Origin: Octopus sinensis
Lineage: Eukaryota
Assembly (NCBI RefSeq): GCF_006345805.1
Contig: NC_043004.1
Span: forward strand, 18,724,001-18,788,000
Direction of reading: 5' to 3'
DNA length: 64,000 bases
A model generated the notes under the pieces. That model was not told the DNA's origin and did no database searches. It saw only the letters and a program-made list of their open reading frames with translations. Numbering within the stretch: position 1 is the stretch's first letter; each line of letters begins with the position of its first letter. Of this stretch, positions 7,545-42,770 are shown in pieces. The position numbers were made by a program, and so were the translations under genes.

Positions 7545-7645
7545 CTTCGTCTTCTTCTTCTTCTTCTTCTTCTTCTTCTTCTTCTTCTTCTTCTTCTCTT
7601 CTTCTTCTCCTCCTCCTCCTCCTCCTCCTCCTCCTCCTCCACCTC
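7545..7645. repeat. (CTT)n(CCT)n trinucleotide repeat
   Basis: Direct reading; explains the poly-S/L/E/K/G ORFs. Confidence 0.98.
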
Positions 7646-8042
7646 CTACTTTTTCTGGTTCCACTCTTTCGCCTTGTATTCTTTTTTCTCCCCTCCTTAC
7701 CTTTCTCCCTCCTATCATTATACCCCATCCCCTCGATTCCCTTACCCCACATAATTTCATCCACTCAGCCCCATTCCACACACATGCTTTTAATTTTTAT
7801 CCTTTTTTTCTCTCCCGATTCTTTCATTACAACAACGTCTGTTTAGACGGACAATGTAACAGCATGTCTTTGAGGCCAGTCTGAGGAAGTGCCCCTCCAA
7901 TACATAAAACCGGATATATTAATTAATTTTTTTTTAGAATTTTCGCGTAATCTGGCGTTGCAAAAGGAGATGGTACGGAAATATGTGCAACTTATGATTA
8001 AAGCTGTGTTAAAGAATTTTGTTGTCTTCTTCTTTTCATTGT

Positions 8043-8080
<38 letters not shown>

Positions 8081-8193
8081 CATATACACACATACACACA
8101 TATATGTATAGTTCCATTAATAAACTAACTGAAGTGAAATTAATATTTGACCAAATTTAGAAAGTGATATGGCTTTTCATTAATGTAGTTGTT

Positions 8194-9610
8194 TTTATTT
8201 TAAAGCACCAGCTCAGATCAAGAGACTTGCCAATCTAATAATAAACTGTATTTGAATAGAAATGCACGAAATAGAAAATCGAATATTACCTGGCATAACG
8301 TTTCATTTGACCTGTCAACATGAAACTTTTACGTTCGCTCATTAAGTTACTTATTTTCCACTTCATCAGAAGTTCTACCAAATATTCAATAGATCTACCA
8401 TTAAACTTTTGAAGTTCTCCACTTGTAGGTTATGGGGAAGATTCTTGTTGGTAGTTAAGCCATAGAGACCATTATTCTTTTGGTCTTACGACTGATTCTT
8501 CATCTTTCATAATCACCATCTCATACTCAAAATATGAGAATTCGTCGTGAACAGCAACAACTGAAGATACTGTTGCTTGGTAAGCGTTGGTACCTCCATG
8601 AGAGAGACGTGTAGGTATTGTTTCTCCATATTGATGCTGTCGTGATTACCTATCGCTAGAATTCACTAGGTTGGAATTATTTTTGTAATTAACACTGAGC
8701 TAAGATGTCCGGCACGAGTCCATTGAGTTTAGGTTACGGTAAACTCCTTCATTAAACTTTAATCAGCATATCGAAGGATAGGGTAAATTTCTAAGTCAAA
8801 GCCACATTAGATAATAGAAAACGCAGAAAGCATTGATATTCTTATGCGTTGGTATGCCCGTGTTACAACGAGCCGATTGCAGATGTCCATTTTTTTGGTA
8901 TTTATGCAAAGAATACAATATTTTAGTTGTGGTGTACTCTTTTATACATATTTTCATGAAAAATGTACAAAAATGAAGTGATGTAACAACAAACAATAAA
9001 ACAAATATGAATATCAGCCAGAGAGGATAGAGAGGGGAAAAGAGAGAAATACTGAGATGATGTTAAGAGAAAAGAGAGAAAAAAGAGAAAAGAAGGAAGT
9101 AAAGAACACTAAAGTGCGTGTATGTATTGTGTGTGTGAGTGTGTTTTGTGGCGTGTGTTTGTGTGTCTATGTGATATATATATATATATATATATCACAT
9201 AGATATATATATCTCTATGTGAGAAATGAAATTGGGATAATGGCAAAGCGGATGATAAAAGTTGGGTCGTAAATTTACCTTCCAAATCAATTTAAGATTC
9301 GGAAAAATGGTTTTAGATGTAGAACACTTATCGGCAAAGGGAGAAGTAATTACAACGCGTATGTACATAACAATAGAAATAAAAATTTATTCGTATAATG
9401 ATTAGTTTTAATGAATTAAATTCCTAATGAATTAAATTCCTAATGAATAAATTGCCTTAATTCTAGATATACTGGTAATTAATATTTATCACTTGAGTAT
9501 AATCAGTTGAAATGTACAATCTGCATCCTATATAGAGGATGACAGCCACATACAGAGGGCAAAACCGTTTTCGTACATCAGTGGGAGTTATATAACTATT
9601 ACGCCATCAC
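8194..9610 (-). pseudogene. Putative decayed paralogue (A-type) of the peptide gene
   Basis: 55-nt GT..AG segment (8289-8235) preceded by K-R-Y-A codons; AATAAA at 8194-8199; TATA/exon-1-like block near 9560-9610; no intact signal-peptide exon found. Confidence 0.35.
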
Positions 9611-10699
9611 TTGTTAACAGAATAACTATAAACATTACCATTATTGCAAATCTGTTTTAATTAAAGAATGTTTGCCATGATGGATCTTGTATAGAAAAAT
9701 ATATATACACACTTTAAAACTATATATTTTCCCGAAATATTCTACATAAAAAGCTTCAATACGAACACAACAGAGAACAAAACAGAGAGGAAAATTTACA
9801 TTATTTTGAAAGACAAATTTTGTAGAGGTGAACGACTGGTTAAAACATCCAGAAAACTGACCATTTGTCAAACTTGAGTTATAAACTTTTGAGTCATACT
9901 CGTGCTCATTTTAAAGTCATAAATGGAGGGATTTTATTATAGACACTTTGAAATGCTGGGAGTAGAAAACTTACTTTTAGTTTTAGGTTCCTTTAATCGG
10001 TGAAGCGCTGAGGATGTAGAAAGATGTGTTCAAAGACTTGCGTTTTATTCTCCTAGTGAAACATCTGCCATCTTACGCATGCATACATGCACGCATACAT
10101 ACACAACAGATATAAAGAAATTCGATTTTTTACGACAAGAAAGAACGATTATTTTATTCTAATGCAAAGCACTTAAATATACTTTTGGAAACAACATTCT
10201 TCGTTATTGAATTACTTATAAAGTGCAGTAACATCTTTAAAGTAAAATTCCGTATGCGTATATTTCAAACATTGGCGTTTCATTGGTTTTCATTTCTTAT
10301 GTGAGATAGTTGCGTCGTGACGCTAAATTCTCACTGCCTTAAGTGGAAGTACGTGGCCTAATGTGTTGAGTGTTGGTCTCACAATCATTAGGTGATTGGT
10401 TCGATTCTCAAACCAGGCAGTTTGCTGATTCCTTGAGAAAGGTACAATATTCAAGCTCCTCCATATGGCGTAAATGAAATGGATGACCGACAAATATGCC
10501 TCTTAATCAGGAGTGAGTGTTGCATTGCTGGTTGTCTAGATGTCTCGATTATCCATATAAGTTTCAGTCTCGTGTGACAGTAGACTCCAGGCAGACTAAT
10601 CTGTTTTGTAACGATTAACAAACATAAACGATTTAATCGTCTGAAGAGAAACATGTGCATTTGACACTCTCTTATACGCGCCTATACTCATTTATATCA

Positions 10700-10962
10700 T
10701 GCTTTATTCCCTTTACTTGTTTCGGCAATGGGACTGGAGCCATGTAGGGATACTACGTTCAAAACATTAATCGATCATATACAGACCAGTACTTATTTTC
10801 TATCTGGTGCATTGTTTTATCGCTCTCTTTTCTCTAGTCCGCTAAGTTACGGAAACATAAACAATGCAACACTGGTCGCCAAGCGGTGAGAGATAAACAC
10901 AAACATAAATAGATAGACAGACAAGTAAATATATAGATAGATAGATAGCCATGTAGCTAGCT

Positions 10963-11008
<46 letters not shown>

Positions 11009-11035
11009 AGAGATAGATAGATAGATAGATAGATT

Positions 11036-11083
<48 letters not shown>

Positions 11084-11230
11084 TACAACAGGATTTAGTG
11101 CAGTTTCTGTTTACCACGTAATCTCTGAAGGTATTAGTCGTGCGTAGGGCATAGAGAGAGACGTTTGCTCAAGATGCTGTGGTATGGAACTTGAACCCGA
11201 AACCATGTGGTTGCCAAGCGTACTTCTTAA
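10700..11230 (-). mobile_element. SINE family A with internal (GA)n/(GATA)n
   Basis: Head (ggttccgggttcaagttccataccacagcatcttgagcaaacgtc) and body similar to the 38590-39010 copy. Confidence 0.85.
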
Positions 11231-12808
11231 CAACATAGGTATGCTTGTGTGCATGTGTCTTTTAATGAGAGCCTGATTATTATATTATATTACATTATAT
11301 TATATTATGTTATATGTTATATTATATTATGTAACATATGTGTCTTTGTTTTGAAACTATATTAGTACGAATTACAAACTTGCATCGTTTGCTATTTTTG
11401 CCAGCATGTTTTACAAACTTTGAGAAACAGTATTTTTAATTCAACAGAAGGATTTCACTGATATTGTATTTGAAGTCAGCTTTCATTATCTTCATAAATT
11501 CTTCTTTCTTACGAGTATAAGGAATAATTTACAGAACTTTGTAGAAAAATGTTATGGCTTGTAATATTTGATAGCTAATATCAGAAAAAAATGTAATTAA
11601 TAAGACTCAAGGGAGATAATTATCATTTATAGAGTTCTCTCCCCTGGACAACTTGGTGTATTTCGCCTACAACTTCCTTTCACTAAACAAAGTTTACATT
11701 TGCTTTTCTTAAATTAGATTGGCTAGGAAAATATTAGAGTTTACAAAGAAAATGCTGCGCAGTCGACCAAATCAACTGAGTCATAAATAAAATTTTAAAG
11801 ATGCTTATTTTACCTCATTGTATTTCTATTTTTTTTGTACCATGTATAATTTTTCTCCTTTTTGACATGATGAAAATAATCGACTGAGAGGGGAGAAATG
11901 AGACGTTGTGCAATTCATGCGTTTATTGTAACACTGTGACATAAGTGAACTGATGTAAGCTAAAATCATACAGTAGACAGCTGACTTTTTACTACGGAAC
12001 TTTTGCTTGAAATTTTCGTCACCATTCTTAAGGTTTTATATTATGAGGGGCAAGCTAATATGATACCATGGAATTCATATAATTTCCAAGAGAATATATT
12101 AAAGATATGGATAACATCAAATATCTGCATTGGAGGGCAGAAGTTGTTTTTAGTGGCCTTTGATATTGTACATAAAAATACTGATTTTCAATTTGTTCCC
12201 CGAAAATTTTGATAAAGAAAATGTTTATTCTTTACTTAAACAAAGAAAAACGTTGTTCTTGTTACGAACGACAAAACAGCGATAGAGTTTAGAGATAATT
12301 ATTATTGGTTTGGTGTGACTGTAGCAGCAGTCAAAGTGGGGTTAACCGGCGCTGGTGTTGCTGTCACCATTCTTTCATTGTTCAGCTTCTGTCAATTTGG
12401 GTCAGCTGTTGTCTGCGTCTCTACACTGTCTGCTTGCCGTCTCGTCTCTATGTAGGATCAGAAAGAGGTGCGCCAAAAGATGAAATCGTTGTTTGAGTCT
12501 ATTCCACGCGAAGTCGCGAATGGTCAGTTTTCTTTCGATCACATGGGTAATATTCTAGTGAATCGTGACATTAGATACAGTGATTTCATTGCTAAATGAC
12601 TTTCCCACTAGATTAAAATCTCTTCACACTGAATTGAACAAATGATGAGAATAGTGCAGGAATTGCGTATGTGAAGTGCATAAAGGATCATGCATTAGAA
12701 AAAGTGTTAATGGAGGACTAAGAATGTTGGTTAAATTGTATTGTACTATCAGAAAATGCTTTCGTGCGCAGTGCAGTGCTACCTTATACACGAAATACTG
12801 TACAAGTG

Positions 12809-13231
12809 ACGTATATTTGCCATTACGTCACGATGTGTTGTAGCTACTATTTATAACTCGCTCTGAGATTTATTATTGCTTGTTTCCACTTTTTCGATAT
12901 CAGTGTCTATCGATACTGGAAAAAGGTATAAGTATTTGTGAAGGGAACCTACTTCTCATCGACAACTGTGATTGTCACACGCCGATGACGGGTCAATACT
13001 CAGAAACTCGAGTCTGTGTGTATCATAAGTTGAAGACGGGAAGGATGGCTCCCCTTTGCAAATACTGACAGGGCACAGAAAGTGTGTCTATAGCCAGCTG
13101 GAGGAGGTGTCCTCCTGGGGCTACAAACTACAGTAGCATCCACCCTTTGGGGTTAGCCATAATTGAATGGCAAATATACGTCACGATGTGTTGTAGCTAC
13201 TGTTTATAACTCACTCTGAGATTTATTATTG
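12809..13231 (+). mobile_element. Non-coding hammerhead-bearing retroelement (PLE-derived, retrozyme-like) with 12-bp TSD
   Basis: TSD actgtacaagtg at 12797-12808 and 13232-13243; absent from A'; ~55-bp terminal direct repeat; short inverted 5' end; internal hammerhead. Confidence 0.75.
12976..13020 (+). ncRNA. Minimal hammerhead ribozyme (variant core)
   Basis: CACACG-CCGATGA-CGGGtcaataCTCA-GAAA-CTCGA-GTC-TGTGTG; palindromic ACTCGAGT stem III. Confidence 0.65.
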
Positions 13232-13879
13232 ACTGTACAAGTGTATGTTGCAAAAGTCTGCGAGTCCAAGTAGATGAGAAATAAAACAAAAATTAAACAA
13301 ACAGTACGCAAGAAAGGTCAGAATTGTGGCTGAAAATTAGGCCAGAATATAATTGTAAAAATAGCAGGAAAGAAAATCTGATGAGGATACCCCTATGTAC
13401 GTGAGCGAGACGAGGGCAGCTAAATGCGGGACTGAGTGAGTGAGAGGCTCGTACATGATCATGTGCATGTACACCAGTGAGTCGGTGTAGTGTCTAATCT
13501 TGGGTCGGTAGTTGCACATTTATATGCATTTGGATAAGTGCATTTGAATTGAATACTCGTGGGTGAGTATTGTGAACGATTTCAGCTATTTTCGAGCGTT
13601 GGAGCATAAGCAGCTGAAGGGCGCTGGCATCTTCTAACCATTGCAATTATATGCATATTGCTAGCAATGAATGTGTTTGCAAGTGTTGGTATGCATGCTG
13701 TTCATGTTATAGTGCTTGCGATGTATACGTGTGCTTTGAATCGTATAGTCAAAGAAATGCACCCCACTACTGACACTCGTTCAATCGCATTCTTTTGCGG
13801 TACCGCTAATTTAAACAAACCAACAACGGTTGGAGAGTAGTTGGAGGGGTAATACCTGCCTATATACATATTTACAGTA

Positions 13880-14080
13880 AACTTCCGCACAATTTCCCTC
13901 TGTTAAATTCACTAAGGAATTACAACCGTGTTTCGTGGTCTGCTACCACAACAGCTCCTTTATAGGATCCAGTTAGCTCAAGACATCATCAGGAGAAACC
14001 ACGTCCGGTTTCGGCCCCTACTCCTCTACCGTTTTGACGTGGCGCCCCCCCCCCTTTCGGAGGTGTCTTCAGCTCTGGTG
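13880..14080 (-). mobile_element. PLE terminal-repeat-like fragment with degenerate hammerhead cores
   Basis: Minus strand CTGATGA-TGTC...GACCAC-GAAAC-ACG-GTT and CTGAAGA...GGCC-GAAAC. Confidence 0.4.
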
Positions 14081-15061
14081 TTGGTCGGCCGGAATTATGC
14101 AGAAGATACAGTCGGACTGAACCCAAAACCAAGTGGTTCCTAAGCAAATTTCTTAACCACAGCCATGCCTTTACCTGTATATATCATTCGTGTATTAGTG
14201 TGCGTGTTTGTATGTGTGCGTGTATATATGTATATGTATGTGTGTGTACATGTCTGAGCATGTGTGCGCGTGTGCGTGTGTGTCTGCCTAATAGATTGCT
14301 ATAGGGAAAAGTAAATTTTTCAGAGTTAAGTTTCGGGTCAATAATTAATAAAATCATCTCTCCTGTTAAGTCAAATTTTGAAACATGAAACGATAATTTT
14401 TGATTATAAACAGATTTTGAATTGTAAGAAAATACTAATGATCACTGAAACATGTTCAACTGGTTTTTCAAAGTTTATTTCAGAGGTAGAGAGTGAAAAT
14501 ATTTATAATAGTCATATTCAAATAATAATGCTGACGTTAGAAAACGAATAAATTCTCATTCCTTATCTTCGATACTTCGGAAATATTTACATACCGGATT
14601 AATGACCAAGAACACTGTAATGACAAACGAAAATGTAATAATAAAACCAGTTTTAAATAAATCAAATATAATTAATGAAATGATATCGAAATGATTTAAA
14701 GCTATCATTACATGAAAACATTTTATTCAACAGAATTTCATTTAATATTCTTTCTGAGAAGCATTTCGAAGTTGAAGTTAAATAATTATATTCAACAACC
14801 ATTACCATCAGTTATATTGACGAAGACAGAAAATAATAAATTTGAAAAAGCACCATTAGTATTTACCTATGTCTGTCTCAGAGGCAGAATATTACAAAAA
14901 AAAGCCAAAACAGGAGATCACAAATTCCATCAAATACTGATACCTTTCTGTCGGTATATTATTATCTCCTCTTCTGCCATCTCAACGTTGTGCTCCCGTA
15001 TTTGTGTGTTACCAAATGATAAAGTTGTTAAACATCCAATCTTCTACACCTTTATACCAAA

Positions 15062-15567
15062 CTAGCAGTATCGCCCGGCGTTGCTCGGGTTTGTAAGGGA
15101 AATAACTATATAAGCATTTTTAGAGAGTTACTTCCCTTATAAATTCGGGCTTTCTTAGCCATTTTTATTTTGGTGTCTTCAAGCCATGAAGTCGTTGTTC
15201 TAAAAGAACGCTGGTTTCCTTCACAACGCATTACGACGTTGATTTCTTTACACTCCCTTCCCCACAGCTTCACGAGGGAGGGAAGGGGGAGAAGCAAACA
15301 GGTGCAGCTGTGAGCGTGGACGCCAACTCCGCCGCCATCGACACACGATGCATTTTATGCATTAAAATGGAATAAAAAATGATGTTAAATTATTTTTAAA
15401 ATCGTAGACTCATCGTTGACGCGCGCTAATAGTCAGACGGGCTCGATATGAATCACGACTATAAGATACCCGAATTTGGTTAAATTGCACCGCAAAATGT
15501 GGGAGGAGTTAGGAATCTAAATCGAAGGGGACAGACACTCACACAACTAGAGTTTTATATATATAGA
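15062..15567 (-). mobile_element. Non-autonomous Helitron
   Basis: Minus strand starts TC and ends CTAG; 3' hairpin cccgagcaacgccggg; inserted at A|T with no TSD; empty site in A' (gcata|tttga at ~37370). Confidence 0.9.
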
Positions 15568-15989
15568 TATGCTACAGCATTTAAGCCATTGCGAATTAAC
15601 TTCAACAGTCTCCAAAAGAAATGTCAGCCATTGTACTCTAATTCTAATTTCCGAATATTTTGGAAATTTCAGAATTTTTTGAAGTAAACTTTTAATTAAT
15701 TAGGTTTCCCTTCATTTCCCTTTACTCAATAATATGCCATTATTCGTTAGGTTGATATATATTAGTAATAATAGAAAAAGTGTAATGCTTGTAAATGATT
15801 TTACTCACATGCGGCAGGCTCCAGAACAGAGAAATTCCCATATTCCATCGACAAGTGTCTCGCATACATTTACACAACCTGCAGATAAATCTAATCCACG
15901 AAGCTTGTCAACAAGTCCGGACACTTAAAAATATGAAAAAGAAAAATAATTAATTTTAAGAATTGTTAGTAAATGAATGAAAGATACAG

Positions 15990-16680
15990 TATTCGAAAGG
16001 CGGTTAAAAAGTTCATAGGCCCAAAAGGTACAGTCATTGAATGTGACCAGATGAGGTTTGTTTTTCAACATAGTCTCCCTTGCGCTCCACACACTTCTTC
16101 GATCGGTGTTGCAGTGCTTCGATCATATTGGTGAACAAGCTTTCATCCTGTTGGTAAAAACTCATTAACAGCAGATATGATGTCATCCTCACTGCCATAG
16201 TGGTTCCCAGCCAAGTGTTTTTTCCTGTTGGTGAACAAATGGGGGCCAAATCAGGAGAACAGTGAGGGTAATCAACCAGTTTAAAGCCACAGTTACGCAC
16301 AACAGCCATTGAAGCCAAGGACTTGTGTCCTGAAGCATTGTTCTGATAACCAACACTCCTTTCCTCAGTTTCCCTAGGTGTATGGTATTGACATCCTTTC
16401 GCAACTGCCTCAGCAATCTGGCATAGTACTCTCCATCGATGGCATGGAAATTTTGGAGATATTCAATAAACACAATGATTTTTGCATCCTAAAAAGCTGA
16501 GGCCATCACCTTTCCTGAAAATGAAATGACTTTGGTCTTCGTTGGAACAAATGAGGAGGAGTGATTCCACTGCATGGATTGTCATCCTGTCTCTGGTTCA
16601 AAGTGCTGAACCTAACATTCATCCTGGATTAGAAAACGTCCAAGGAAACCAAATGGATCTGCCTCATACAATGACAGATG
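15990..16680 (-). mobile_element. Mariner fragment (3' half), inserted before the duplication
   Basis: YPHCSPDLAP and GKLRKGVL motifs; one TIR at 15990; same insertion at 37762. Confidence 0.9.
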
Positions 16681-16819
16681 AGAAAGATTAGAGGAGGGGA
16701 GACATTCGATAGAAGAAGGGAAAGAGAATGGCCGAAATTGAGGAAGGGATAATCATAAAGATAGCTTTTGTAATTGGTTCATCTCACAAAACATTTGTTT
16801 GGTGCAGGAATGGCTGTAT

Positions 16820-16950
16820 GGTAAGAAGATTGTTTCAGTCTCACTGCGCGGTACCTTGGGCAGGTGTCTTCTAATATAGCCTCGGGTCGACCAAAACCTT
16901 GTGAATGGATTTGGTGGACAGAGACTCACAGAAGACCTTCGTATAAATTC
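16820..16950 (+). mobile_element. SINE family A head (CORE-like ccttgggcaggtgtctt); tail at ~17700-17890
   Basis: Similarity to other family A copies. Confidence 0.75.
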
Positions 16951-17106
16951 TGCTACATTTTTTCTGAGAGGAAATACAGTTCTTATTTCCATATATATTA
17001 TATATATCATAAATTAAAAAAAAATCGGGGAAAAGGCAACAATAAAAAGCAATAACGTGAGGACGTAGCACATGTACAGTATTAATAAGGCGCTCACAGA
17101 AGGATT

Positions 17107-17141
17107 GCTTTATGTTTCGAGCATAGCTCTTCTTCGGAAAC
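17107..17141 (-). ncRNA. Minimal hammerhead ribozyme (variant core) in a 6140-type repeat
   Basis: Minus strand GTTT-CCGAAGA-A-GAGC-tat-GCTC-GAAAC-ATA-AAGC. Confidence 0.6.
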
Positions 17142-17398
17142 AGGAAGTATAGGAAAGTCCAAAGGAAAAGGAAGAAGGAGGGAAAAAAGTCGACAACAGT
17201 CGACGCGTAATTATATTTTTGAAACGACCGGAATTAGAAGGATAAAGAGAAAGTGCTTTCTGGGACAGGTGCGTGTGAGGAATGGTTGGTATATGTGTGC
17301 ATATGTGTGTGTACCTGTATGCGTGTATGGTGGCATGTTTGTGTGTGTGTGTGATAGCGTATGCGTGTATGGTAGCGTGTGTATGTGTGTGTGATAGT

Positions 17399-17433
<35 letters not shown>

Positions 17434-18489
17434 GCGTGATAGCATGTGTGCGTGTGGCGGTAACTGCGTTTGTAATGTCGTAGTGAGAGATCAGCTGCTA
17501 TAGTGACAGGTGTGTGTATGGGTGGGTGTGGTAGTGCGTGTGTACGTATGTATGTGTGTTTTAGCATGTGAGTTTAGATGCAATGGTCAATATTGAGTTG
17601 GAGCAGTCTGAAGCAGTCTGATAGGTATGTGAATGAGTGGACGTGGATGTGCGTTCATGTGTGTTTTCGTGTATGCATGTATGTGTGCGTGTGTTTGTCT
17701 ATGTTTGTCCCCAACATCACCGCTTGACAACCGGTGTTGGTGTGTTTACGTCCCCGTAACTTAGCGGTTCTGCAAAAGAGAAGGATACAAGTACAATCCT
17801 TAAAAAATAAATTCTTGATTGTCTGAAACCCCACAAGGCGGTGTTCCATCGTGTGTTCAGTCAGATGATAAAAACAAGAAAAAGAATAACAGAAAAGAAA
17901 CAACTGTCTTCAGGTCATTTACTATTGTATTGAAATTTCACACCGGCCACTCACTCTCATGGTCAACTTAAATCTATAATATTTGGTCATTCGGACCATC
18001 TCACATTGAGAGTGAATTGTATTCGAAAAAAAAAATGATTGAAAACTTAGCAGTAACTACAGGGCAGGTAAGAGTGGATAGTAAATAGAAATAGAAGAAA
18101 AATGTGAGGTTAAAAATAAGACCAAATTAAAAATTAAATAAAAATGAAATCGAAATATAACTTTGAATTAAGTTTAACAATTTTCAAAAAATTAAAATAT
18201 GAAAAGAATTAAGGATTAAAAATTAGAATTGAAAAATTAAAAATCAAAAAATATTAAAAGCATTAAAAAATGAAAAAGATTGAAAAAAATTGTAAAAACT
18301 AGTTATGCCTTGTCTTGTATATTCACTGATTAAAAACCAGCATAAGCGGAACACAACAATGGATTTACAATATGGAATGGTGATGAACTATAACTTTGGA
18401 CCCTGTTTATTTTGAGTGTTCAAAAATAGCTATGGTGTGAATAAATTGGATGGCTGTACCTTTTATTTCTCGGTTTTTGTCAACAATAT

Positions 18490-18710
18490 TTGGCACAGGT
18501 CCAGCAAGTTTGTGTGGGATGGTGTGTGGGGTGCGGTGGATAAGCCGATTACATCGATCACAATGTTCTACTGGCACTTATTTTATCGATCTAGAAAGGG
18601 TGAAAGGCAAAGTCGACCTCAGTGGCATTTTAACTCAGAACGTGAAGACGGACGAAATGTCGCCAAGAATTTTGCCTGGCGCTCTAACGATTCTGCAACC
18701 TCGCCAACTT
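18490..18710 (+). mobile_element. SINE family B
   Basis: tggcacttattttatcgat...aaaggcaaagtcgacctc...aactcagaacgt motif; also at 21020, 41940 and 47795. Confidence 0.85.
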
Positions 18711-18773
18711 TGTCAACGATATTTAAGAACGTAAAGTAGAAGCCAGCTAAGGAAAGACATGCAAGGCTTTTTT

Positions 18774-18779
18774 TTTATT
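18774..18779 (-). terminator. AATAAA polyadenylation signal of peptide gene B
   Basis: About 86 nt downstream of the stop; conserved in B' (42205-42210). Confidence 0.7.
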
Positions 18780-18864
18780 CTTCCCATTAATTTGATGAAC
18801 ATAGACGTTTAGGTGAATTGTCGATAACTAAAGGCGGTATTTGGGAGTGACGTTTATACCTTTT

Positions 18865-19074
18865 TCAAGGGTACTTGCAGAATAAAGCTTTACAAAAGAA
18901 GTCATCCTTGTAGATTCGTTCACCTGTAGATAACTTTAAATAGAAATATGTCCAAATGTAATGAAATGACAGCAACTTACAAGAAAATCTCTTATCGATA
19001 TCCTCGTCATATTGGGACATAGCTGCCATTGCCAATGGCAACAAAACCAGCAACATTATAAACACGACCTTCAT
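18865..19074 (-). CDS. Small secreted prepropeptide, copy B: join(19074..18981,18923..18865), MKVVFIMLLVLLPLAMA-AMSQYDEDIDKR-FSCERIYKDDFFCKALFCKYP (50 aa)
   Basis: Hydrophobic signal peptide ending A-M-A; acidic pro-region; KR site; donor T|GTAAGT at 18980 and acceptor CTACAG| at 18924 (57-nt intron); upstream acceptor ttttcttttcatttaatttgttccag at 19083; A at -3; intact in both paralogues. Confidence 0.85.
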   Translation of the reverse strand: MKVVFIMLLVLLPLAMAAMSQYDEDIDKRFSCKLLSFHYIWTYFYLKLSTGERIYKDDFFCKALFCKYP

Positions 19075-19563
19075 TATTGTTTCTGGAACAAATTAAATGA
19101 AAAGAAAAAGATTATTTTTCTAAATACTGTTTCAATTGTTAAAAACTCGGAAAATAAAACCCAACCTAAAATAGTTCTACAAATTTGCACTGTACAAGGA
19201 TATTTGGTCTCAGAAGAAACTATGATTTAGGGATGAACTAATGGAATAATTTCATACTTAAGCGGTTTAGCGACATTATTTATAAATATATAGGCAAGTG
19301 GAATCAAGGATTGTTTTGATTTTGAAAAGAAGTTATAGCTTGCTCTACAGTAATCACCACAAAGTCGATTAATAGTTGAAAGTAATATTATTGTTATGTT
19401 TACTTGTGAGAATGTCTGATAAAAGTGTATAGGGAATGGTATGTTCTTGAAGCTTTTGTCAAGGACATTTGTATGACGTAAGGTACTAACAATTAATTTG
19501 GATATTGTAACTGAGTTACAAAAAATTATATACAGGACTTTCAACTCCTTGTGTAAAGCGTAC

Positions 19564-19602
19564 CGTCTCTGCTACATCATCGTCCCCGTTAGTTTATTTA
19601 TA
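19564..19602 (-). promoter_or_regulatory. TATA box (TATAAATA, 19602-19595) and short 5'UTR exon ending at donor ACG|GTACGC (19563)
   Basis: Conserved in B' (TATA 42809-42802, donor GTATGC at 42770); a ~220-bp deletion in B' lies wholly within the predicted intron 1. Confidence 0.6.
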
Positions 19603-21019
19603 AAAATCACAGGTAAGAGAAATATTATTATGTAACTTTTCTGTCTTTCTCGTGAATAGTTACAAAATATTTTCAGTATTTCGAATCATTACTAAACCAC
19701 CGATAACTTACTTAGATCATGTGGATCTAATTATAATGATAATAGTTTGTTTTGGTTAAAGAGAATAATCCTATATGTAAAAGGGAATTATCATTTTTCC
19801 AAATACATCAGCAGCACAAATGATTTCATGATTTCAAACTGGAATCGAAATCTTTTCACACGGTCATTTCTGTTACTCTGCCTTCTTAAATTTTCCATAC
19901 TGACATATATGGAAATGATATTAATCTTAATCTTGCTATGTACTTTTAGAGACAGAACAGCTAAAGAGATTAGATTAAATAAGTACAAAGGCCTTCTACT
20001 ATAAAGTATATGTACAAAGAACTGATTTATAAGCGAAGAAGCATGCAATTCTACATCTTTCACATCAAGTAATATTTCGTAAGCTTTGTTATTTATAGAA
20101 ATCCTGGATTACTAAATGAGTTTGATGTTTCAGTTAATTCTACCACCTTCATTTATGCTGAAGGTTAATTGAAAACTTAACATTCGGTGGTGGAATATCT
20201 CATTTGTTCAACACAGAAATAATAAATTCGAGAAGGCACGATCGGTATTTACTTATGTCTTTCTCAGAGACAGAATATTACAACTAAAGTGAAAACGGGA
20301 AATCACCAGATCCTATCCATAAAGTTAATTCTTTTACTAATCATGGAGTTCCATAGCAACGCCGTATTGCTTTTCATGGAACTAGACGGGTGAGAGACAC
20401 ATCAACCGTTGAATAAAATGCTAGCCTATTGCAGATAACTTTATCAGGATGTCGCCGTATCGCTATTTACACTTTAGGTCGAATGGGACAATTTAAAACC
20501 AAATTTCCTCCCAAGCAATTGAATCAATTCCCCATAACGGAAATGAATTCACAGTATAAGGCTTCAAGATAACATTTATCAGGCTAAACTGATTAAAATT
20601 TCTGAATTTGCACTACCCAAACTAGTGTTTCTCTTTTGAATTAGTGAATCAATAAGTTCAATAAGTTATTAATATAAGGACAATATTCCGCAGAAATAAA
20701 TTCCTTACCTTGGTTGATGCAGGACTTCCAATTCTAAAGTACCGACCTTTGCTCCCTTAAACCTATTTATTGAATCTTCACAGATGGCACTTTTCCCTTA
20801 GGGTATGCTTTATCGTTCAGAAATATCTAAATGTGATAAAGAATATGAAGTTATCATAAAATAGGTGAATTTATTTGCCTTTTGTAAAAGCGTTTAAAAG
20901 TGCTAATCATCTTTAGACAGAGTAATAATCTATTCAACAATTACCTAAATCTGAGTTAACCAAACAAGGACACATGTACTATAGTTAATCACATATAAAG
21001 TAGTTTCAAATTTTGGCAG

Positions 21020-21190
21020 CAATTTCAATATTAGTGGATTAGACTGATCCCAGTGTTCAACTGGTACATATTTTATCGACCCAGAAATGATAAAAGGCGA
21101 AGTCGACCGCAGCTGAATTTGAACTCTGAACGTAAACACAAACGAAATACTGCTAAGCATTTTGCCCCACGTGCTAACGATTCTCGATTC
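21020..21190 (+). mobile_element. SINE family B
   Basis: Same motif as the 18490 copy; paralogous to 47795. Confidence 0.8.
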
Positions 21191-25273: not shown

Positions 25274-25889
25274 ATACAACAACCGTAAACGTTCAGCACA
25301 ATGGTTAAGCAAAGACGAAACACCAAAACACAGTCCAAAAAGCAAAATTCATCAAGAGAAGCTGACGGTGTGTGTTTGGTGTTCTGGCGAAGGTGTGATC
25401 CATTATGATTTCATTAAACCTGGTTCGTCAATCACGGCCTAAGTATACTGCTGCCAACTGGAGCAAATAATGCAGAAACTTACAAAAAGAAAAAACAACA
25501 GCCTAGATTAGTCAATAGATTTACTCCTATTTTATTGCAAGTCAGCACCAGATCACACATCACAAAAATGGCATTGGCGAAACTACAGGAGTTGGAGTTG
25601 GAAGTTCTCCATCATCCACCATACTCACCTGATCTTGCCCCCACTGACTATCATTTCTTCCAGAATTTGGATAACTTTTTGATAGGAAAAAAAGTTAATT
25701 CCGACGATGTTGTAAAACAGGCCTTCCAAGATTTTATTGATTTCCGATTGCCAGGCTTTTACATTTCCGGGAAATGGCAAAGTGTATTGACAATACGGGT
25801 GCATACTTTGATGAATAAAACTATTCCTTGTATTTATAAAACATTAGCAAACTTTTTCTGTTCTACAAATTTCGTACTTGATGACCTAA
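25274..25889 (+). mobile_element. Mariner fragment (3' half with right TIR)
   Basis: NRKRSAQWLSKDE, VWCSGEGVIHYD, HPPYSPDLAPTDYHFF; TIR ending gatgacctaaTA. Confidence 0.92.
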
Positions 25890-26119
25890 TATTAATAAGG
25901 TCTTAGAAAATAACGGAAAGAATGTAAACATTAATATTAATAGTAAAACTAACAGGGAGGGCAATATAAATAGAAATGATAACAAGGACAACAGCAGCAG
26001 CAGTGATGGTGATAGTAATAGTAATAACAATGATAATGATAGTAATACTAGTAATAATTGAAGATAGTGGTAGTGATGATGATGGGAATGATGGTGATAA
26101 TAATAATAACGGTAACAGT

Positions 26120-26620: not shown

Positions 26621-26787
26621 GCGTAAGAGAAAAATGAAAATTACATAATTATACACACACACACACACATACACACGCGCGCACACACACACACATATAT
26701 GTATATGATTTCTTTTAGTTAAATTTTAAAATCTTAAAAATTGAAAAATTTCTATTTTATCTGTTTATTCATTTTAATATTGTTGCA

Positions 26788-26789
<2 letters not shown>

Positions 26790-26874
<85 letters not shown>

Positions 26875-26875
26875 G
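26790..26875. repeat. (ATT)n microsatellite
   Basis: Direct reading. Confidence 0.99.
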
Positions 26876-27879
26876 CTGTTGTTGTTGTTCTAGTATTACT
26901 ATCTATTTCGTAAAATTCTTTTAATTCTTATAAATTTTAGTTTGTTTTAATGTTAATTTTATAAAGTTTAACTTTAGTTGAAATTTTAATTCTTAATCTA
27001 TTTAATGGTTTAAGTTTAGATATTCTATTAGTTTAGATCCTAGCTAACCAAAGCTTCCTCAATATCTCCATCATTATATGATTATTATGGCTGTTTCATT
27101 CATTTTCTAATACAATTCCCCTACTATGCATGATAGTAAAAATGACCAAATATTAAAGACTTGAGTTGACCATGTGTCTAAATGGCCCATATTAAATTTC
27201 AACACAATATTTGGAGAATATCTAACCTAAAAACAATGCAAATATATTCATGTGTGTTGACCTGATTACAAAACACTAATGTTTTATGACTGTCCTTTCC
27301 TCAATTTCGGCCATCCTATCATCCTTCTTTTATCGAGTGCTTCCCTTCCTCTCTTCTTTTCTTCCATTCTTTCTCTTCACTTTAGTCCTTCCGTTCCAAA
27401 TCATTACTTATCTTGCCCTTTCCTCTTTATCTCTTTTCGACTTGCCTCTTTTCTATTCTTTTTTCCTCTCCTCCAATTGAGACATATATTAGTAACGAAC
27501 CTATAATGACTACTGGAAACAGCTGAAAGACAAATTTACTCCAATAAAGGAAAAATATTTAATGAGCATTATTTATACATTGTCTTGTGTATCACTCCAT
27601 GTAACAATGAATTTTATTGAAGCACAACCACGGATTTACTATATAGAACAGCGATAAACTATAATGTCGGATCCTGCCAGAAGAACACTTGGAGTTCCTT
27701 TTACTAATATAAACAATATTGTTAGCCTGGCGTGCCAGCAGAGAGCTTATGGAGTATTTTGCTCGGATTGATAATCCCTCACCTATGAATATATATATAC
27801 CAATTCATTAATAAATTAACGGAAGTTTAATTGACATTTGACCACGTTTAAAAAGTGATATGGCTTTTCATTAATGTAG

Positions 27880-29093
27880 TTGATTTTATTTTAAAGCACC
27901 ATCTCCGATCAAGGGACCTGCCAAACCAGTATGATCTAATAAATATATCTAATAGTAAACTATATTTGAATAGAGATGGCTGAAATAGAAAATCGAATAT
28001 TTCCTGGTAAAACGTTTCATTTAACCTGTCAACATATAACTTTGACATTTGCTCCTTATGATATTTATGGAGAATTTTCCACCTCATCATAAGTACTACC
28101 ATATATTCAATAGGTCTACCATTAAACTTTTGAAGTTCTCCTCTAGTAGGTTATGGGGTAGATTATTGTAGGTACTTAAGCTACATAAACCATTATTCTT
28201 TTGGTCTTACGACTGATTGTTCATCTTTCATACTCACCATCTTATACTCAAAAAATGAGAATTCGTCGTGAACAGCAGCAACTGAAGATACTGTTGCTTG
28301 GTAAGCGTTGGTACCTCCATGAGAGAGACGTGTAGATATTGTTTTCGTGATTACCTATCGCTAGAATTCAGCAGGTTGGAAATAACTCTGTAATTAACAG
28401 CGTGGTAAGATGCCCAGGACGAGTCCATTGAGTTTAGGTAACAGTAACGGTTTGCTCATTAACCTCCTATATCCTACGTGCTATAAATTAAATCACCATA
28501 TCCAAGGATATGAGAGAGAGAGAGAGAGAGGGATAGATAGATAGATAGATAGATAGATAGAGAGAGAGAAATCTAAAAATAAAGTACGACAGCATAGTTA
28601 TAATAGTAGTAATGATGGTGATGAAAACATCAACCGTCTTAATGCATTCACCACCAGCAAAAGCAAACAATTGTAGTGTTGAGTATACGAAAAGTGTATA
28701 AAGATACGGACAACAGTAAGAGATGAAATTGGGATAATGGCAAAGCAGATGATAAAATATTCGGGTCGTAAATTTACCTTCCAAATCAATTTAAGATTTG
28801 GAAAAATGGCTTTAGATATAGAACGCTTATCAGTAAACGGAGAAGTAATTACAACGTGCATGTACACAGCAATGGTGATAAAAATGTATTCGTATAATGA
28901 TCAGTTGTAATGAATTAAATTCCTAATGAATAAATTGCCTTAATTCTAGGTATACTGGTAATAAATATTTATCACTAGAATATAATCAGTTGAAATGTAC
29001 AATCTGCATCCTATATAGAGGATGACAGCCACATACAGAGGGCAAAACCGTTTTCGTATATCAGTGGGAGTTTTATAACTATTACGCCATCAC
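27880..29093 (-). pseudogene. Putative decayed paralogue (A'-type) of the peptide gene
   Basis: 55-nt intron-like segment (28003-27949) with donor mutated to GA, preceded by K-R-F-T codons; downstream flank 27575-27680 homologous to B flank 18310-18410. Confidence 0.35.
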
Positions 29094-29859
29094 CTGTTAA
29101 CTTAATGTCCATAAACCATCATTGCAAATCTGTTTTAATTAAGGCTATACATAGAAAGGAATATTTGCCATGATGGATATTGTATAAGCATAATAAAAAA
29201 ATGTATGTACAAACTTTAAAACTATGTATTTTCCCGAAATATTCTACATAAAAACTTCAATACAAACTCAGCAGAGAACAAAACATGGAGGAAAATATAC
29301 ATTATTTTGAAAGACGAATTTTGTAGCTGAAACTTCCAGAAAATTGCCCATTTTTCAAACTTGAGTTATAAAGTTCGATTCACAATTGTCCTCAGTTTAA
29401 AGTCATAAATGTAGTGGACTATTAGTCAAATTCTCTGTGCGTATATTTCAAACATTGGCGTTTCATTGCTTCTCATTTCTACTTTGAGATACTGTTTTTG
29501 ATGAAGATACGTGGCCTAATGTGTCGAGTGTTGGTCTCCCTATCATTAGGTGATTGGTTCGATTCTTAGACTTGCTGGGTGTACTGAGTCCTTGAGAAAA
29601 GTACATTATTCATGTTGATCCATATAGCCGTAAATGAAACGGAAGAGTGACAGATTTGCTTCTTAATCAGAACCGAATGTTGCACTGTTGGTTGCCTAGA
29701 TGTTTCAATTATCCAGATAAGTTCCAGCCTCGTATGACAGTAGATTCCAGACAGACTAATCTTTTTTATAACGATTAACAAACGTCGGCGATTTAATCTT
29801 CCGAAGAGAAATATGTACATTTGTACTCTCATATACGCGCCTATAGTTATTTATACTCT

Positions 29860-30179
29860 TTTTATTCCTTTCACATGTTTCAGCTATTGGATTGAGACCA
29901 TACAATTGACACTACCTTCAAAGCATTAATCGATCAAATAAAGACTAGTACTTATCTTCTACCTGGTACTTCTCTTTTATCACCCACTTTTCACTAGCCC
30001 GCTAAGTTACGGAAACATAAACAATGCAACACCGGTCGAAAAGCGGTGGGAGATAAACACAAACACAAATAGATAGACAGACACACAGTGAGACAGGTAA
30101 ATGCATAGATAAATTGGTAGATATACAGCTGGCTAAATAGATAAAGAGATAGATAGACAGACAGACGGACAGATTGATA

Positions 30180-30180
<1 letters not shown>
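29860..30180 (-). mobile_element. SINE family A, split by the PLE; remainder at ~33596-33750
   Basis: Paralogue of the uninterrupted 10700-11230 copy. Confidence 0.8.
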
Positions 30181-30275
<95 letters not shown>

Positions 30276-30365
30276 GTGTGTGTAACGGTTAAAAAACATG
30301 ATAGCGTTCCCTTCATATACGCAGTCATCACATTCTGTTAAAATGTCTTATTGATGTTTGGTTTC

Positions 30366-30460
30366 TTTCTTTCCCCGATGAGAAGATTGCATTGTTTTAC
30401 ACCATTTTAGTCCTTCTGGAATAATATCAATGTTGTCTTCGAAACATATGTCGGAAGTAA
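30366..30460 (+). ncRNA. Hammerhead ribozyme in the 5' terminal repeat
   Basis: TTCC-CCGATGA-GAAGA..CATTG/CAATG..TCTTC-GAAA-CATATGTC-GGAA; palindromic ACATATGT. Confidence 0.65.
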
Positions 30461-33349: not shown

Positions 33350-33445
33350 TTTCTTTCCCTGATGAGTAGATTGCATTGTTTTACACCATCTTATTCCTTC
33401 TGGAATAATACCAATGTTGTCTTCGAAACACATGTTGGAAGTAAA
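33350..33445 (+). ncRNA. Hammerhead ribozyme in the 3' terminal repeat
   Basis: TTCC-CTGATGA...TCTTC-GAAA-CACATGTT-GGAA. Confidence 0.65.
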
Positions 33446-33472
33446 ATAATTTAAATAACACCTGTGTTTAAC

Positions 33473-33594
<122 letters not shown>

Positions 33595-35629: not shown

Positions 35630-35990
35630 GAGCAGCTAATTGTGGGCTAGTAGATGGGGAACAAGGAATTTATCTTTCGGACTTCTTTTAGATCGTAAGG
35701 ACACTTCTAGGTTTTGTCTGCGAACGGGGAATCCTATACTCGCTGGAAATGGTAGTGCTGGAAATGGATGCATGGAGTGAAAACTTCTTGGCGAGTAATT
35801 AGCGACCCAGGTTTCAGAGAATCTTAGAGCTACCTCGGCTAAGAAAGTTTGCAGCGAAAACTCACGTTCATGTAGGGCTCCGGCCCCTCTAAGAAAGGAC
35901 ACACATACGAGCACACACACATACCTTATACATACATACATACATACATACATACATACATACATACATACATACATACATACATACACA
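35630..35990 (+). mobile_element. Probable LINE 3' end with (CATA)n tail
   Basis: GC-richer insert absent from A, ending in a simple-repeat tail. Confidence 0.3.
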
Positions 35991-37761
35991 TACGAGAATA
36001 CGCTACAATATTTGTTTTGAGAAGATGTAAAGATCAGTATAAATGTCCGATGTTATTTTTGCTCTATTCTGATCGCATGTATGTTTTGTTTTATTTATCA
36101 GTGTGTCCCATTTTCTTTAACGCATTTTATTTTTGACTCCTCATTTTCTTTATACTTGCATACTTCATTTTATTGCTGATATGAGAAGATTTTTTTTTAT
36201 ATCTCAGTTCTTATGAGGACGCAGAGTACGCTACACTTATCAAAATGTATTGTTACACAAATAAGAGAAGCGCAAATAGAAAACGAAGTAATTTTAAATA
36301 AGTCATCAGAGGAGACGCTTCCGCACATAAGATGCATCACAACTGTTTGTACAACATCTCGCCTGGATGGTACCGGTGCATGACGGGTTGAAACGATCGT
36401 AATGGTTCCGAAAAAAAGAGTGTCATGAATTTCCATTTTTTTTTCTTATAAAATAAAGCAATTCTTCAAGTAAATCCAGTGGCATATACACCCATACGGA
36501 TGTTGATATCATGTAACCGAATATTGTGAAAGAGCTTTTAACAGTACACTACAATGTGTATACCTGATTATAAAGTTATTACTTATATATGTATATATAT
36601 AACTAATGTAGGATAAGATTTTTTTCGAAAGAAAAAAAATTAATCAATGGCCAGCATATCAAAAAATACCTTTAAAGGTTAAATTTATAAATATAAGTTA
36701 TATATATATATATATATATATAATCAAAGAATTCCTTGTTTTTCTCTTGTTTCGCATTTTATATGCTGCATGTTTAGTAGGGTGGTTAGTGAAAATATTC
36801 ACAATTGTTACTTTCAAATAATAATGCTGACATTAGAAAAGAAAAGTAGTAAAACGAATAACTTCTCATTGTTTATTTTCTATACTTAGGATATGTTTAC
36901 ATACTGCATTAATTACCAACAAGCCTGTAATGATAAAAGAAAATGTAATAATAAAACCAATTTTAAATGAATTAAATATAATTATTGAAATAATAATCAA
37001 AATAATTTAAAGCTATCGTTGCGTTGAAAACATTTTAGTCAATAGGCTTTCATTTAATATTCTTTCTGAGAAGCATTTCCAAATTGAAGTTAAATAATTA
37101 TATTCAACAACCATTGCCTTCAGTTATATTGATGAAGAGATAAAAGAATAAATTTGAAAAGGTACCATTAATATTTAGCTATACTCAGAGGTAGAATATT
37201 ACAATAAAAGCCGAAACGGGAGATCACAAACTCCATCGAAAATAGGAATAGTGATCCCTTTCTGTCGGTATACTATTATTTCCTCTTCTGCCATCTCAAT
37301 CTTGTGCTTTCGCATTTGTATGTTATCAAATGATAAAGTTGTTAAACATTCAATCTTCTACACATTTATATCAAATATGCTACAGCTTTTAAGCCATTGC
37401 GAATTAACTTTTTTCAACAGTGTCTAAAGGAAATAATGTCAGACATTGTACTATAATTCTAATTTCCGGATAGTTTGACAATTTCGGAATTTTTGAAGTA
37501 AACTTTAATTCATTAGGTTGGTATATATTTAATAGTAATAGAAGAGTGTGACGTTTATAAATGATTCTACTTACAAGTCGCAGGCTGAAGGACAGAGAAA
37601 ACTCCAAAATCCTCCGGCAATTGCTGAGCATGCAGATTCACAGCCTTTAGATAAATCTAAGCTACGGAGCTTCTCAACAAGATCGGACACTGAGAAATAT
37701 GAAAAAAAAAGAAAATAATTAATTTTAAGGATTGTTAGTAAATAAAAAAATATATATATAG

Positions 37762-38070
37762 TATTCGAGAGTCGGTTATAAAGTTCATAGGCCGAAAAGG
37801 TACAGTCATGAATGTGACCAAAGGAAGTTTATCTTTAAACATAGTCACCCTTGCGGTCCACACACTTCTTCCATCGATGTCGTAGTGCTTCGATCCCACT
37901 GGTGAACAAGCTTTCATTTTGTTGGTCAAAAAAGTCATTAACATCAGATATGAAGTTATCCTCAATACTATTCTGGTTCCCAGCCAGGTGTTTTTTCATG
38001 TTGGGGAATAGACGATAGTCAGATGGGGCCAAATCAGGAGAATAGGGACAGTAATCAACCAAGAACCAAT
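37762..38070 (-). mobile_element. Mariner fragment (paralogue of 15990)
   Basis: YSPDLAPSDYRLFPNMKKHL...RHRWKKCV. Confidence 0.9.
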
Positions 38071-38237
38071 ACAGTTATTGATAAGAAGAGTTGAAGTGCA
38101 TGCAAGATTTCACAGCTCTAGAATCACTTCTTCATAGTCAGCCTATGAACGTTTTATCCTACCATCGTAGAATACACACACACACGCGCGCGCACACACA
38201 CACAGACACACACACACACACAGACATACACGCACGC

Positions 38238-38273
<36 letters not shown>

Positions 38274-38429
38274 GCACGTACACACAAACACACACAGACA
38301 CAAACACATACGCACACACACACTCAGACACACATACATATATATATATATATACGTATATGTATTCTGTGTGTGTATGTCGGTATACACACACACTCAC
38401 ACACACACACACATACATACGTGTATGTT

Positions 38430-38792: not shown

Positions 38793-38831
<39 letters not shown>

Positions 38832-39010: not shown

Positions 39011-39072
39011 TGTAAACACACAAACATAGGTTGTCAAGTGATGGTGATTGGGCAAACACAGACACACAAATA

Positions 39073-40500: not shown

Positions 40501-40559
40501 CTGAAGGAATACTTCGAAAGAATGGAGTAGGACTGTGATATTAAGATATCACTCACCTC

Positions 40560-42295: not shown

Positions 42296-42502
42296 TCAAG
42301 GGTACTTGCAGAATAAAGATTTACAAAAGAAGTCATCCTTGTAGATTCGTTCATCTGTAGATAACTTTAAATAGAAATACGTCCAAATGTAATGAAATGA
42401 CAACTTACAAGAGAATCTCTTATCGATATCCTCGTCATATTGGGACATAGCTGCCATTGCCAATGGCAACACAACCAGCAAAATTATAAACACGACCTTC
42501 AT
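42296..42502 (-). CDS. Small secreted prepropeptide, copy B': join(42502..42409,42354..42296), MKVVFIILLVVLPLAMA-AMSQYDEDIDKR-FSYERIYKDDFFCKSLFCKYP (50 aa)
   Basis: Same architecture as B; donor GTAAGT at 42408, acceptor at 42355 (54-nt intron), upstream acceptor at 42511. Confidence 0.85.
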   Translation of the reverse strand: MKVVFIILLVVLPLAMAAMSQYDEDIDKRFSCKLSFHYIWTYFYLKLSTDERIYKDDFFCKSLFCKYP

Positions 42503-42770
42503 TGTTGTTTCTGGAACAAATTAAATGAAAAGAAAAAGATTATTTTCTAAATACTATTTCAATTGTTAAAAACTTGGAAAATAAAACCCAACCTAAAACA
42601 GTTCTACAAATTTGCACTGCACAAGGATATTTGGTCTCAGAAGAAACTATAATTTAGGGATGAACTAATGGAATAATTTGATACTACGTTACCAACAATT
42701 AATTTGGATATTGTAACTGAGTTATAAAAAAATGATATACAGGACTTTCAACTCATTGTGTATGGCATAC

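Follow-up and report, generated by a model that had tools for sequence, protein, structure and literature searches.

The stretch of DNA analysed here ("the window") comprises 64,000 nucleotides (nt) of the Octopus sinensis contig NC_043004.1 (assembly GCF_006345805.1; forward-strand positions 18,724,001 to 18,788,000), is numbered below from its first letter, and holds, on the minus strand, two tandem copies of a small gene whose predicted product is a secreted, cysteine (Cys)-containing peptide. An initial annotation, made from the letters alone, had proposed a gene of this kind at 18774-19602, and the letter-level features it listed are all present on the minus strand when the sequence is read; its remark that small genes of this sort are often missed by annotation holds here as well, as this copy ("copy 1") is without a database entry. 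The only part of 18774-19602 that has support beyond chance is the signal/propeptide exon (19082..18981), i.e., exon 2 of copy 1, which consists of 8 nt of 5' untranslated region (UTR) and coding sequence (CDS) from an ATG at 19074. It is preceded by a pyrimidine-rich acceptor (AG at 19084-19083, 8 nt 5' of the ATG, which has an A at -3), encodes a 17-amino-acid (aa) hydrophobic leader (MKVVFIMLLVLLPLAMA) followed by AMSQYDEDID, KR and FS, the propeptide (AMSQYDEDIDKR) thus ending in K-R, and closes with a phase 1 donor (T/GTAAGT at 18981/18980, the slash marking the junction here and below) that leaves the first base of the next codon within the exon. This exon shares 94% identity with residues 1-31 of P0001, a 74-aa "hypothetical predicted protein" of O. 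vulgaris (OX597821.1, GCA_951406725.2), and matches a conserved protein family both in tblastn (E ~1e-15) and in profile comparisons. The best explanation overall, which we consider likely, is that exon 2 supplies the signal peptide and propeptide of a 74-aa prepropeptide whose gene belongs to an orphan four-Cys molluscan family.

As to the remainder of copy 1, it is very probably a four-exon gene, in which a 5'-UTR exon ending at 19564 is followed by 19082-18981, 15923-15809 and 14614-14599, all on the minus strand. Intron 2 (15924..18980) would measure 3057 nt, be of phase 1 and run from the donor at 18980 to an acceptor (ttttaag/) ending at 15924, after which the 115-nt exon 3 (15809..15923; tblastn E=5e-12) encodes (L)SGLVDKLRGLDLSAGCVNVCETLVDGIWEFLCSGACR(I), a CX3C-X11-CX3C mature domain. 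The acceptor of this exon (tttttcatatttttaag) follows a long pyrimidine tract, its donor (AT/GTGAGT) is of phase 2, and the encoded segment (LDLSAGCVNVCETLVDGIWEFLCSGAC) keeps all of the four Cys and the Ala that are invariant in the family. The terminal coding exon (14599..14614, 16 nt, acceptor tcattacag/), placed by alignment to the last exon of the second copy, would add (I)VLGH and a TAA stop at 14601-14599. The spliced 74-aa product, MKVVFIMLLVLLPLAMAAMSQYDEDIDKRFSLSGLVDKLRGLDLSAGCVNVCETLVDGIWEFLCSGACRIVLGH, matches all family members over its full length (blastp E 1e-37 to 1e-4).

The second copy ("copy 2") surfaced when the precursor of the initial annotation was compared with the window by tblastn, which returned a paralogue at 42502..42299 of the minus strand. 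Its exon 2 (42409..42510, ATG at 42502) encodes MKVVFIILLVVLPLAMAAMSQYDEDIDKRFS, identical to residues 1-31 of P0001, its exon 3 (37575..37689) encodes (L)SDLVEKLRSLDLSKGCESACSAIAGGFWSFLCPSACD(L), and its terminal coding exon (36909..36924) contributes (L)LVGN and a stop, with an AATAAA 32 nt downstream. Spliced (42502..42409, 37689..37575, 36924..36909), copy 2 yields a protein identical to the already annotated P0001, whose gene spans 5.5 kb and whose locus is 94-98.5% identical to the window. A third family gene was sought in the window and not found.

The extent of the family was explored with P0001 as the HMMER query in a full scan of 1.84 billion representative proteins, together with a profile search, and around 25 small proteins, all of them labelled uncharacterised, were recovered. 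These stem from O. bimaculoides (at least seven, among them A0A0L8GWF1, A0A0L8FGZ6 and A0A0L8IA49, the latter (P0021) being an orthologue that shares 77% identity with P0001 from end to end), O. vulgaris (three others, on a different chromosome; the paralogue P0016, CAI9736015.1, is on OX597831.1), Argonauta hians (GAB1605707.1) and the bivalves Magallana gigas (A0A8W8NII5), Crassostrea virginica, Ostrea edulis (LOC125645877 and LOC125645876), two Saccostrea and two Pinctada species (P. fucata A0A194ANM4). The proposal of a family confined to the octopus lineage thus has to be abandoned, as members are found in cuttlefish and oysters as well. Members are ~70-80 aa long and share a signal peptide of the M-K...L...(L/I/V)-P type, a short acidic propeptide, K-R and a C-x3-C-x11-C-x2-A-C mature domain. 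M1, K2, L9 and P13, all present in copy 1, are invariant across 12-16 aligned members, K28 and R29 vary little or not at all (M1, K2, P13 and the K-R being kept from octopus to oyster), and neither the four Cys nor the Ala vary; in cephalopods, an L-(D/N)-L-S/T-x-G type motif precedes them. The mature peptide is strongly conserved among the oysters, while that of copy 1 is 53-58% identical to its nearest relatives and absent from the databases searched. No O. sinensis protein is among the family matches, O. vulgaris and O. bimaculoides having 4-7 each, and the O. sinensis annotation seems to have overlooked the family. A Pfam scan of the 74-aa model, the 50-aa precursor of the initial annotation and eight relatives returned nothing at threshold, and a literature search (salivary Cys-rich peptides, family motifs, molluscan CX3C hairpins, the LOC identifiers) found no description of the family. 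Its true membership is that of an unnamed family of "uncharacterized protein" entries, and not of a categorically new kind of system.

Three of the matches require separate mention. A 1521-aa bacterial repeat protein (P0004) was rejected as a spurious HMMER match, whereas a 2831-aa protein (P0012), for which the HMMER scan gave no aligned stretch, was set aside unread. The 346-aa P0010 of Pinctada imbricata (KAK3097380.1) has two consecutive mature domains split by RKR and a C-terminal part that looks transposon-like by eye; it is a true precursor with two repeats or, alternatively, a mis-annotated fusion.

The exon layout of the family can be seen in the transcripts of a cuttlefish. Two Logan contigs (L002 and L004) represent the same family member and carry a contiguous signal-pro-mature CDS: L004 has a poly(A) tail after an AATAAA and lacks the last intron but still contains a GT-AG intron immediately 5' of the ATG, and L002 is the reverse, this 5' intron having been spliced out at a junction 2 nt from the start of the ATG and the last one being still there (…AAAAT/GTAAGT). 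The run behind L002 (SRR19578103) is Sepia esculenta larval RNA-seq, as is SRR20545812, the source of another member (P0013), and L004 (SRR25158133, a run not matched to a paper) was taken to be from Sepia esculenta as the two contigs match at 100% over 830 nt. The family mRNA accordingly consists of a 5'-UTR exon, which measures 613 nt or more in the Sepia homologue, followed by an acceptor close upstream of the ATG, the signal-pro-mature CDS and a short C-terminal exon; a spliced and polyadenylated form of it was seen for the Sepia esculenta member. In Ostrea edulis, two genes in tandem, both with three coding exons, have a phase 1 intron a few codons after the KR (AAT C/GTAAGT) and a phase 2 intron that splits the second codon following the last Cys (TCA AC/GTGAGT). 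The corresponding junctions are TCT T/GTAAGT and CGC AT/GTGAGT in copy 1 and TCT T/GTAAGT and GAC TT/GTAAGT in copy 2, so that both intron phases, and the position of the second intron as well, are equal between octopus and oyster. Judged from these gene sequences, the gene structure appears to be ancient and common to bivalves and cephalopods. What emerges is a compact family without a name whose leader and gene structure are unusually conserved across two mollusc classes and which has expanded in octopods. The two oyster genes (8001-10919 and 14940-17651 of L006, Ostrea edulis OX387709.1) are paralogues 7 kb apart with leaders 86% and mature exons 73-76% identical, a tandem duplication pattern that is the same as that of the octopus pair.

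Upstream of exon 2, the initial annotation had placed a TATA box and a short UTR exon. The TATAAA motif is there (19602-19597), as is a donor (GACG/GTACGC, the intron starting at 19563) at the 3' end of the putative 5'-UTR exon (19564..19602), both being kept in copy 2, and the cuttlefish transcripts support the proposed junction between exons 1 and 2 in outline. More doubtful is the role of this TATA box, since the motif lies 38 nt upstream of the exon-1 donor and, as a promoter, would leave a first exon of ~9 nt; the 5'-UTR exon of copy 1 probably starts further upstream than 19602. A second TATAAATA-like motif is found at ~20096-20088 (minus strand), within a block (20166-19967) that is 98% identical between the copies, and, were this motif the promoter, exon 1 would be ~500 nt long and comparable to the Sepia 5'-UTR exon. 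Within intron 1, a segment of ~225 nt (19484-19259, minus strand) is found in copy 1 only, having been either inserted there or deleted from copy 2.

Downstream of exon 2, the initial annotation had read a 57-nt "intron" (18980-18924) ending in an acceptor (ACAG/ at 18924), an "exon 3" (18923-18865) encoding CERIYKDDFFCKALFCKYP with a TGA stop at 18867-18865, and an AATAAA at 18779-18774, which, when spliced, gives FSCERIYKDDFFCKALFCKYP. This "intron" is in frame and free of stops, and the unspliced open reading frame (ORF) would encode 69 aa. Such a read-through is unremarkable because stop-free stretches and long ORFs are common in this AT-rich window: at least 38 stop-free in-frame codons follow 8 of its 65 GTRAGT sites (12%) and 16% of arbitrary positions, 80 of its ATG-initiated ORFs have at least 69 aa, and AATAAA and TATAAA occur at 1.3 and 1.1 per kb, respectively. 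Trinucleotide runs with poly-Leu/poly-Ser readings (7550-7680 and 26774-26875) and abundant microsatellites, many of them (TA)n or (TATG)n tracts, are also present and inflate the count of long stop-free frames. An exact look-up of the 69-aa ORF gave no match; among 5.8 billion proteins, its single match was P0001, and this through the leader only, P0001 sharing the first 31 residues and then continuing as ...KRFS-LSDLVEKLRSLDLSKGCESACSAIAGGFWSFLCPSACDLLVGN. The best reading of 18865..18980 is that it constitutes the first 116 nt of the 3057-nt intron 2 and a chance in-frame read-through, of which similar examples past the family donors are common in automatic gene calls (P0011, P0034-P0038). 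The case shows that an in-frame read-through past a donor can mimic a terminal mini-exon.

The two copies belong to a tandem segmental duplication (~8100-20900 versus 27789-44169 in a self-comparison of the window, 75-90% identity), inside which a tract made up of upstream sequence, exon 2 (97% identical when taken by itself) and the initial 400-580 nt of intron 2 (20170-18590 versus ~43400-42020, the latter being an estimate) is 93-98% identical, compared to ~76-90% elsewhere in the unit, and resembles either a product of gene conversion or a regulatory block under conservation. The middle of copy 1 intron 2 (18400-16300) is not homologous to the corresponding intron of copy 2. While the leaders of the copies agree at 27 of 29 aa (nonsynonymous divergence, dN, 0.03; synonymous divergence, dS, 0), the mature parts agree at 24 of 45 (dN 0.38, dS 0.22), which gives a dN/dS of ~1.7; coming from few sites, this value does not differ significantly from neutrality. 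In exon 3, the copies share 72% identity (32 differences over 115 nt) versus 86-89% in the flanking intron (62 over 493; Fisher p=1.5e-4), a contrast of small numbers to which gene conversion of the 5' half contributes. When set against the O. bimaculoides orthologue, the mature part is identical at 35 of 45 positions for copy 2 and 26 of 45 for copy 1, so that copy 2 is the orthologue that has stayed conservative and copy 1 the divergent one. A peptide containing GCVNVCETLVDGIWEF would be specific to copy 1.

Turning to how else these data could be read, the compact gene of the initial annotation (18774-19602, a 57-nt intron and a 50-aa precursor with a 21-residue, three-Cys mature peptide, as the sole product or an alternative isoform) seems to us very improbable. 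The GTAAGT donor, the ACAG acceptor, the open frame, the stop and the downstream AATAAA are admittedly all there, the ORF is open in copy 2 and the O. vulgaris reference too, and a minor isoform could have gone unrecorded in a protein database that keeps just the longest product per gene; yet the stop-free in-frame "intron" explains the ORF without any splicing, and the 21-mer has no homologue among the 5.8 billion proteins, nor has the mini-exon a counterpart in the paralogous locus (L003) or in the paralogue on O. vulgaris chromosome OX597831.1, which also splits just after KRSL. Its Cys number is, moreover, odd, and the only two differences between the mini-exons of the copies are both non-synonymous, one turning the first Cys (a Cys in the O. 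vulgaris reference) into a Tyr in copy 2. The conservation of the mini-exon between the copies is uninformative because the surrounding exon/intron tract is equally conserved, and its acceptor, which is poor in pyrimidines and has another AG 10 nt upstream, compares poorly with the strong tract of the distal one. Since all homologues run from the same donor into the CX3C domain, which copy 1 encodes ~3 kb downstream, and since the cuttlefish transcripts contradict the proposed 3' end, the gene cannot be regarded as "complete" within 18774-19602; of the layout proposed for it (signal peptide, acidic propeptide, KR, secreted Cys peptide), the order of elements, the exon-2 boundaries and the donor stand, and the 21-mer as the product does not. 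Exon 2 would thus be joined, by homology, to distant exons of a larger protein, which comes near to a refutation named in the initial annotation, albeit this protein is itself hypothetical; no repeat or transposon match, which the initial annotation had named as another way for its gene to fail, was found over the exons. If, as we prefer, copy 1 is the four-exon gene, it could still be a silent or non-functional duplicate with copy 2 as the sole working gene, which we deem improbable: copy 1 is in none of the annotated proteomes or transcript-derived proteins searched, its mature region has drifted from copy 2 and the O. bimaculoides orthologue as given above, its dN/dS is at or above 1, and its proximal poly(A) signal is gone; however, its frame is open across three exons, its four splice dinucleotides, both pyrimidine tracts, the four Cys and the Ala survive a 28% nucleotide divergence of exon 3, it still agrees with copy 2 at 88-98% in the upstream region and in exon 2, and its missing from the proteomes is less telling for small genes of an under-annotated orphan family. 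Exon 3 diverging faster than its flanking intron while the Cys, the Ala and the splice sites are kept is unlike neutral decay and argues for copy 1 being a functional, rapidly diversifying paralogue. Weighing against the preferred account of copy 1 and its product, besides the few sites behind the dN/dS, are the use of the distal acceptor being deduced from homology alone; the nearest AATAAA lying 120 nt after the stop, that of copy 2 having been lost; copy 1 having no transcript, annotated protein or mature-sequence match in the protein collection searched, its own expression being inferred; the annotation behind P0001 mixing Iso-Seq, RNA-seq, protein alignments and ab initio models (PMC10700109); and the structural models described next, which have only moderate confidence and no counterpart in the PDB.

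According to the processing that such a precursor would be expected to undergo, it would enter the endoplasmic reticulum co-translationally, have its signal peptide cut after AMA and be cleaved after the KR by a subtilisin-like proprotein convertase, releasing a 45-residue, net-anionic peptide, FSLSGLVDKLRGLDLSAGCVNVCETLVDGIWEFLCSGACRIVLGH, that would be secreted and act outside the cell. Its two CX3C motifs would probably lie on consecutive helices and form two disulfides, giving a helical hairpin. AlphaFold2 models the mature exon as three short helices with both CX3C motifs in helices at a mean predicted local distance difference test (pLDDT) score of 74, and the full precursor at 61, a range (61-74) that is moderate at best; no PDB match was obtained by a sequence profile search or by two Foldseek searches of these models. 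The net charge of the mature peptides is -2, and a C-terminal Gly, a possible amidation donor, ends many members, with examples in oysters (...SLNG) and among some octopus sequences (...LEQTG), the two copies ending in ...LGH and ...VGN. The peptide to look for would hence be one of 45 residues and two disulfides, and not a 21-mer with three Cys.

Some of these traits are reminiscent of known peptide systems. The conotoxin-type prepropeptides resemble the family in their conserved signal, propeptide, basic site and short disulfide-rich mature peptide, in their multi-copy genes, in a mature region evolving faster than the leader and in the intron between the leader and mature exons; they differ in that no significant sequence match exists (P0001 reaches 13.1 bits, E=0.19, with Pfam PF02950 Conotoxin, below its cut-off of 25.1, and neither the 74-aa copy 1 model nor the 50-aa one matches it) and in a Cys framework that is unlike that of the inhibitor-cystine-knot O-superfamily, and, unlike conotoxins, the family occurs in non-venomous bivalves. 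Helical hairpins with a CX3C...CX3C motif are known from scorpion kappa-KTx (hefutoxin type), framework-XIV cone-snail peptides and plant alpha-hairpinins, the features that define them being antiparallel helices and C1-C4 and C2-C3 disulfides. With these CS-alpha/alpha hairpins the family shares two CX3C motifs ~11 residues apart on two predicted consecutive helices in a small secreted domain, whereas sequence homology is absent, Foldseek gave no match, and the family peptides are longer (45-54 residues), anionic and equipped with an extra N-terminal amphipathic helix, so the likeness is convergent at best. The salivary tachykinins of cephalopods (eledoisin and OctTK) are, like the family, small secreted peptides cut from an octopus precursor; the family is, however, Cys-containing, much longer and not homologous, and the FxGLM-amide motif is absent from both the 50-aa and the 74-aa products.

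As for what such a peptide might do, we would guess, tentatively, that it is an extracellular signalling or hormone-like ligand because of the strong conservation in oysters, the C-terminal Gly of many members and the anionic charge. More specific, and put forward with still greater reserve, is the idea of an ancient molluscan ligand, i.e., a two-disulfide hairpin hormone or neuropeptide that would predate the bivalve-cephalopod split, have kept its intron positions and even its signal peptide since then, and have expanded in tandem and be diversifying in octopods, with copy 1 as a new, fast-evolving member. That the family instead supplies defence or offence effectors (antimicrobial, or of venom/saliva) acting on microbial membranes or prey ion channels, as other hairpins stapled by disulfides do, is the main rival to the ligand reading but appears unlikely to us, even though tandem arrays with at least seven genes in O. 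bimaculoides and at least five in O. vulgaris including the unannotated copy 1, a signal/propeptide region kept while the mature region diverges with dN/dS >1 between paralogues, the CX3C...CX3C motif that is, as a matter of general knowledge, common to CS-alpha/alpha toxins and plant alpha-hairpinins, and the weak, sub-threshold Conotoxin match over the leader would all fit. Against such effectors speak the mature peptides being anionic and hydrophobic, unlike typical cationic antimicrobial peptides, their strong conservation in filter-feeding oysters, the expression of the family in whole cuttlefish larvae, and the O. vulgaris/O. bimaculoides orthologues, in which the mature region (78% identity, versus 76% for the leader) is not hypervariable. 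The venom role envisaged initially is unsupported in particular, as nothing ties the gene to venom or to salivary glands. Families of this sort are candidate orphan ligands in mollusc neuroendocrinology, or defence peptides, and are systematically under-annotated.

Mobile elements are also found around the two genes. A repeat of ~160 nt, probably SINE-like (short interspersed nuclear element), occurs at 18540-18702, 21037-21184, 41972-42126 and 47825-47986 with 76-81% identity, the first of these being the repeat nearest to the exons and lying just downstream of the AATAAA at 18779-18774. Gag-like ORFs, of which one contains a CCHC zinc knuckle, and an ORF for the C-terminal part of a LINE-type (long interspersed nuclear element) reverse transcriptase are located at 40669-41322, 51756-52127 and 52891-53322 of the plus strand, and the first, lying within intron 2 of copy 2, helps to account for the 4.7 kb of this intron versus 3.06 kb in copy 1. 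C-terminal motifs of mariner/Tc1-type transposases, judged by eye to be transposon remnants, are seen at 2056-2418 on the minus strand (PYSLDLAPSDFHLFPKMK) and at 25535-25906 on the plus strand (PYSPDLAPTDYHFFQNL).

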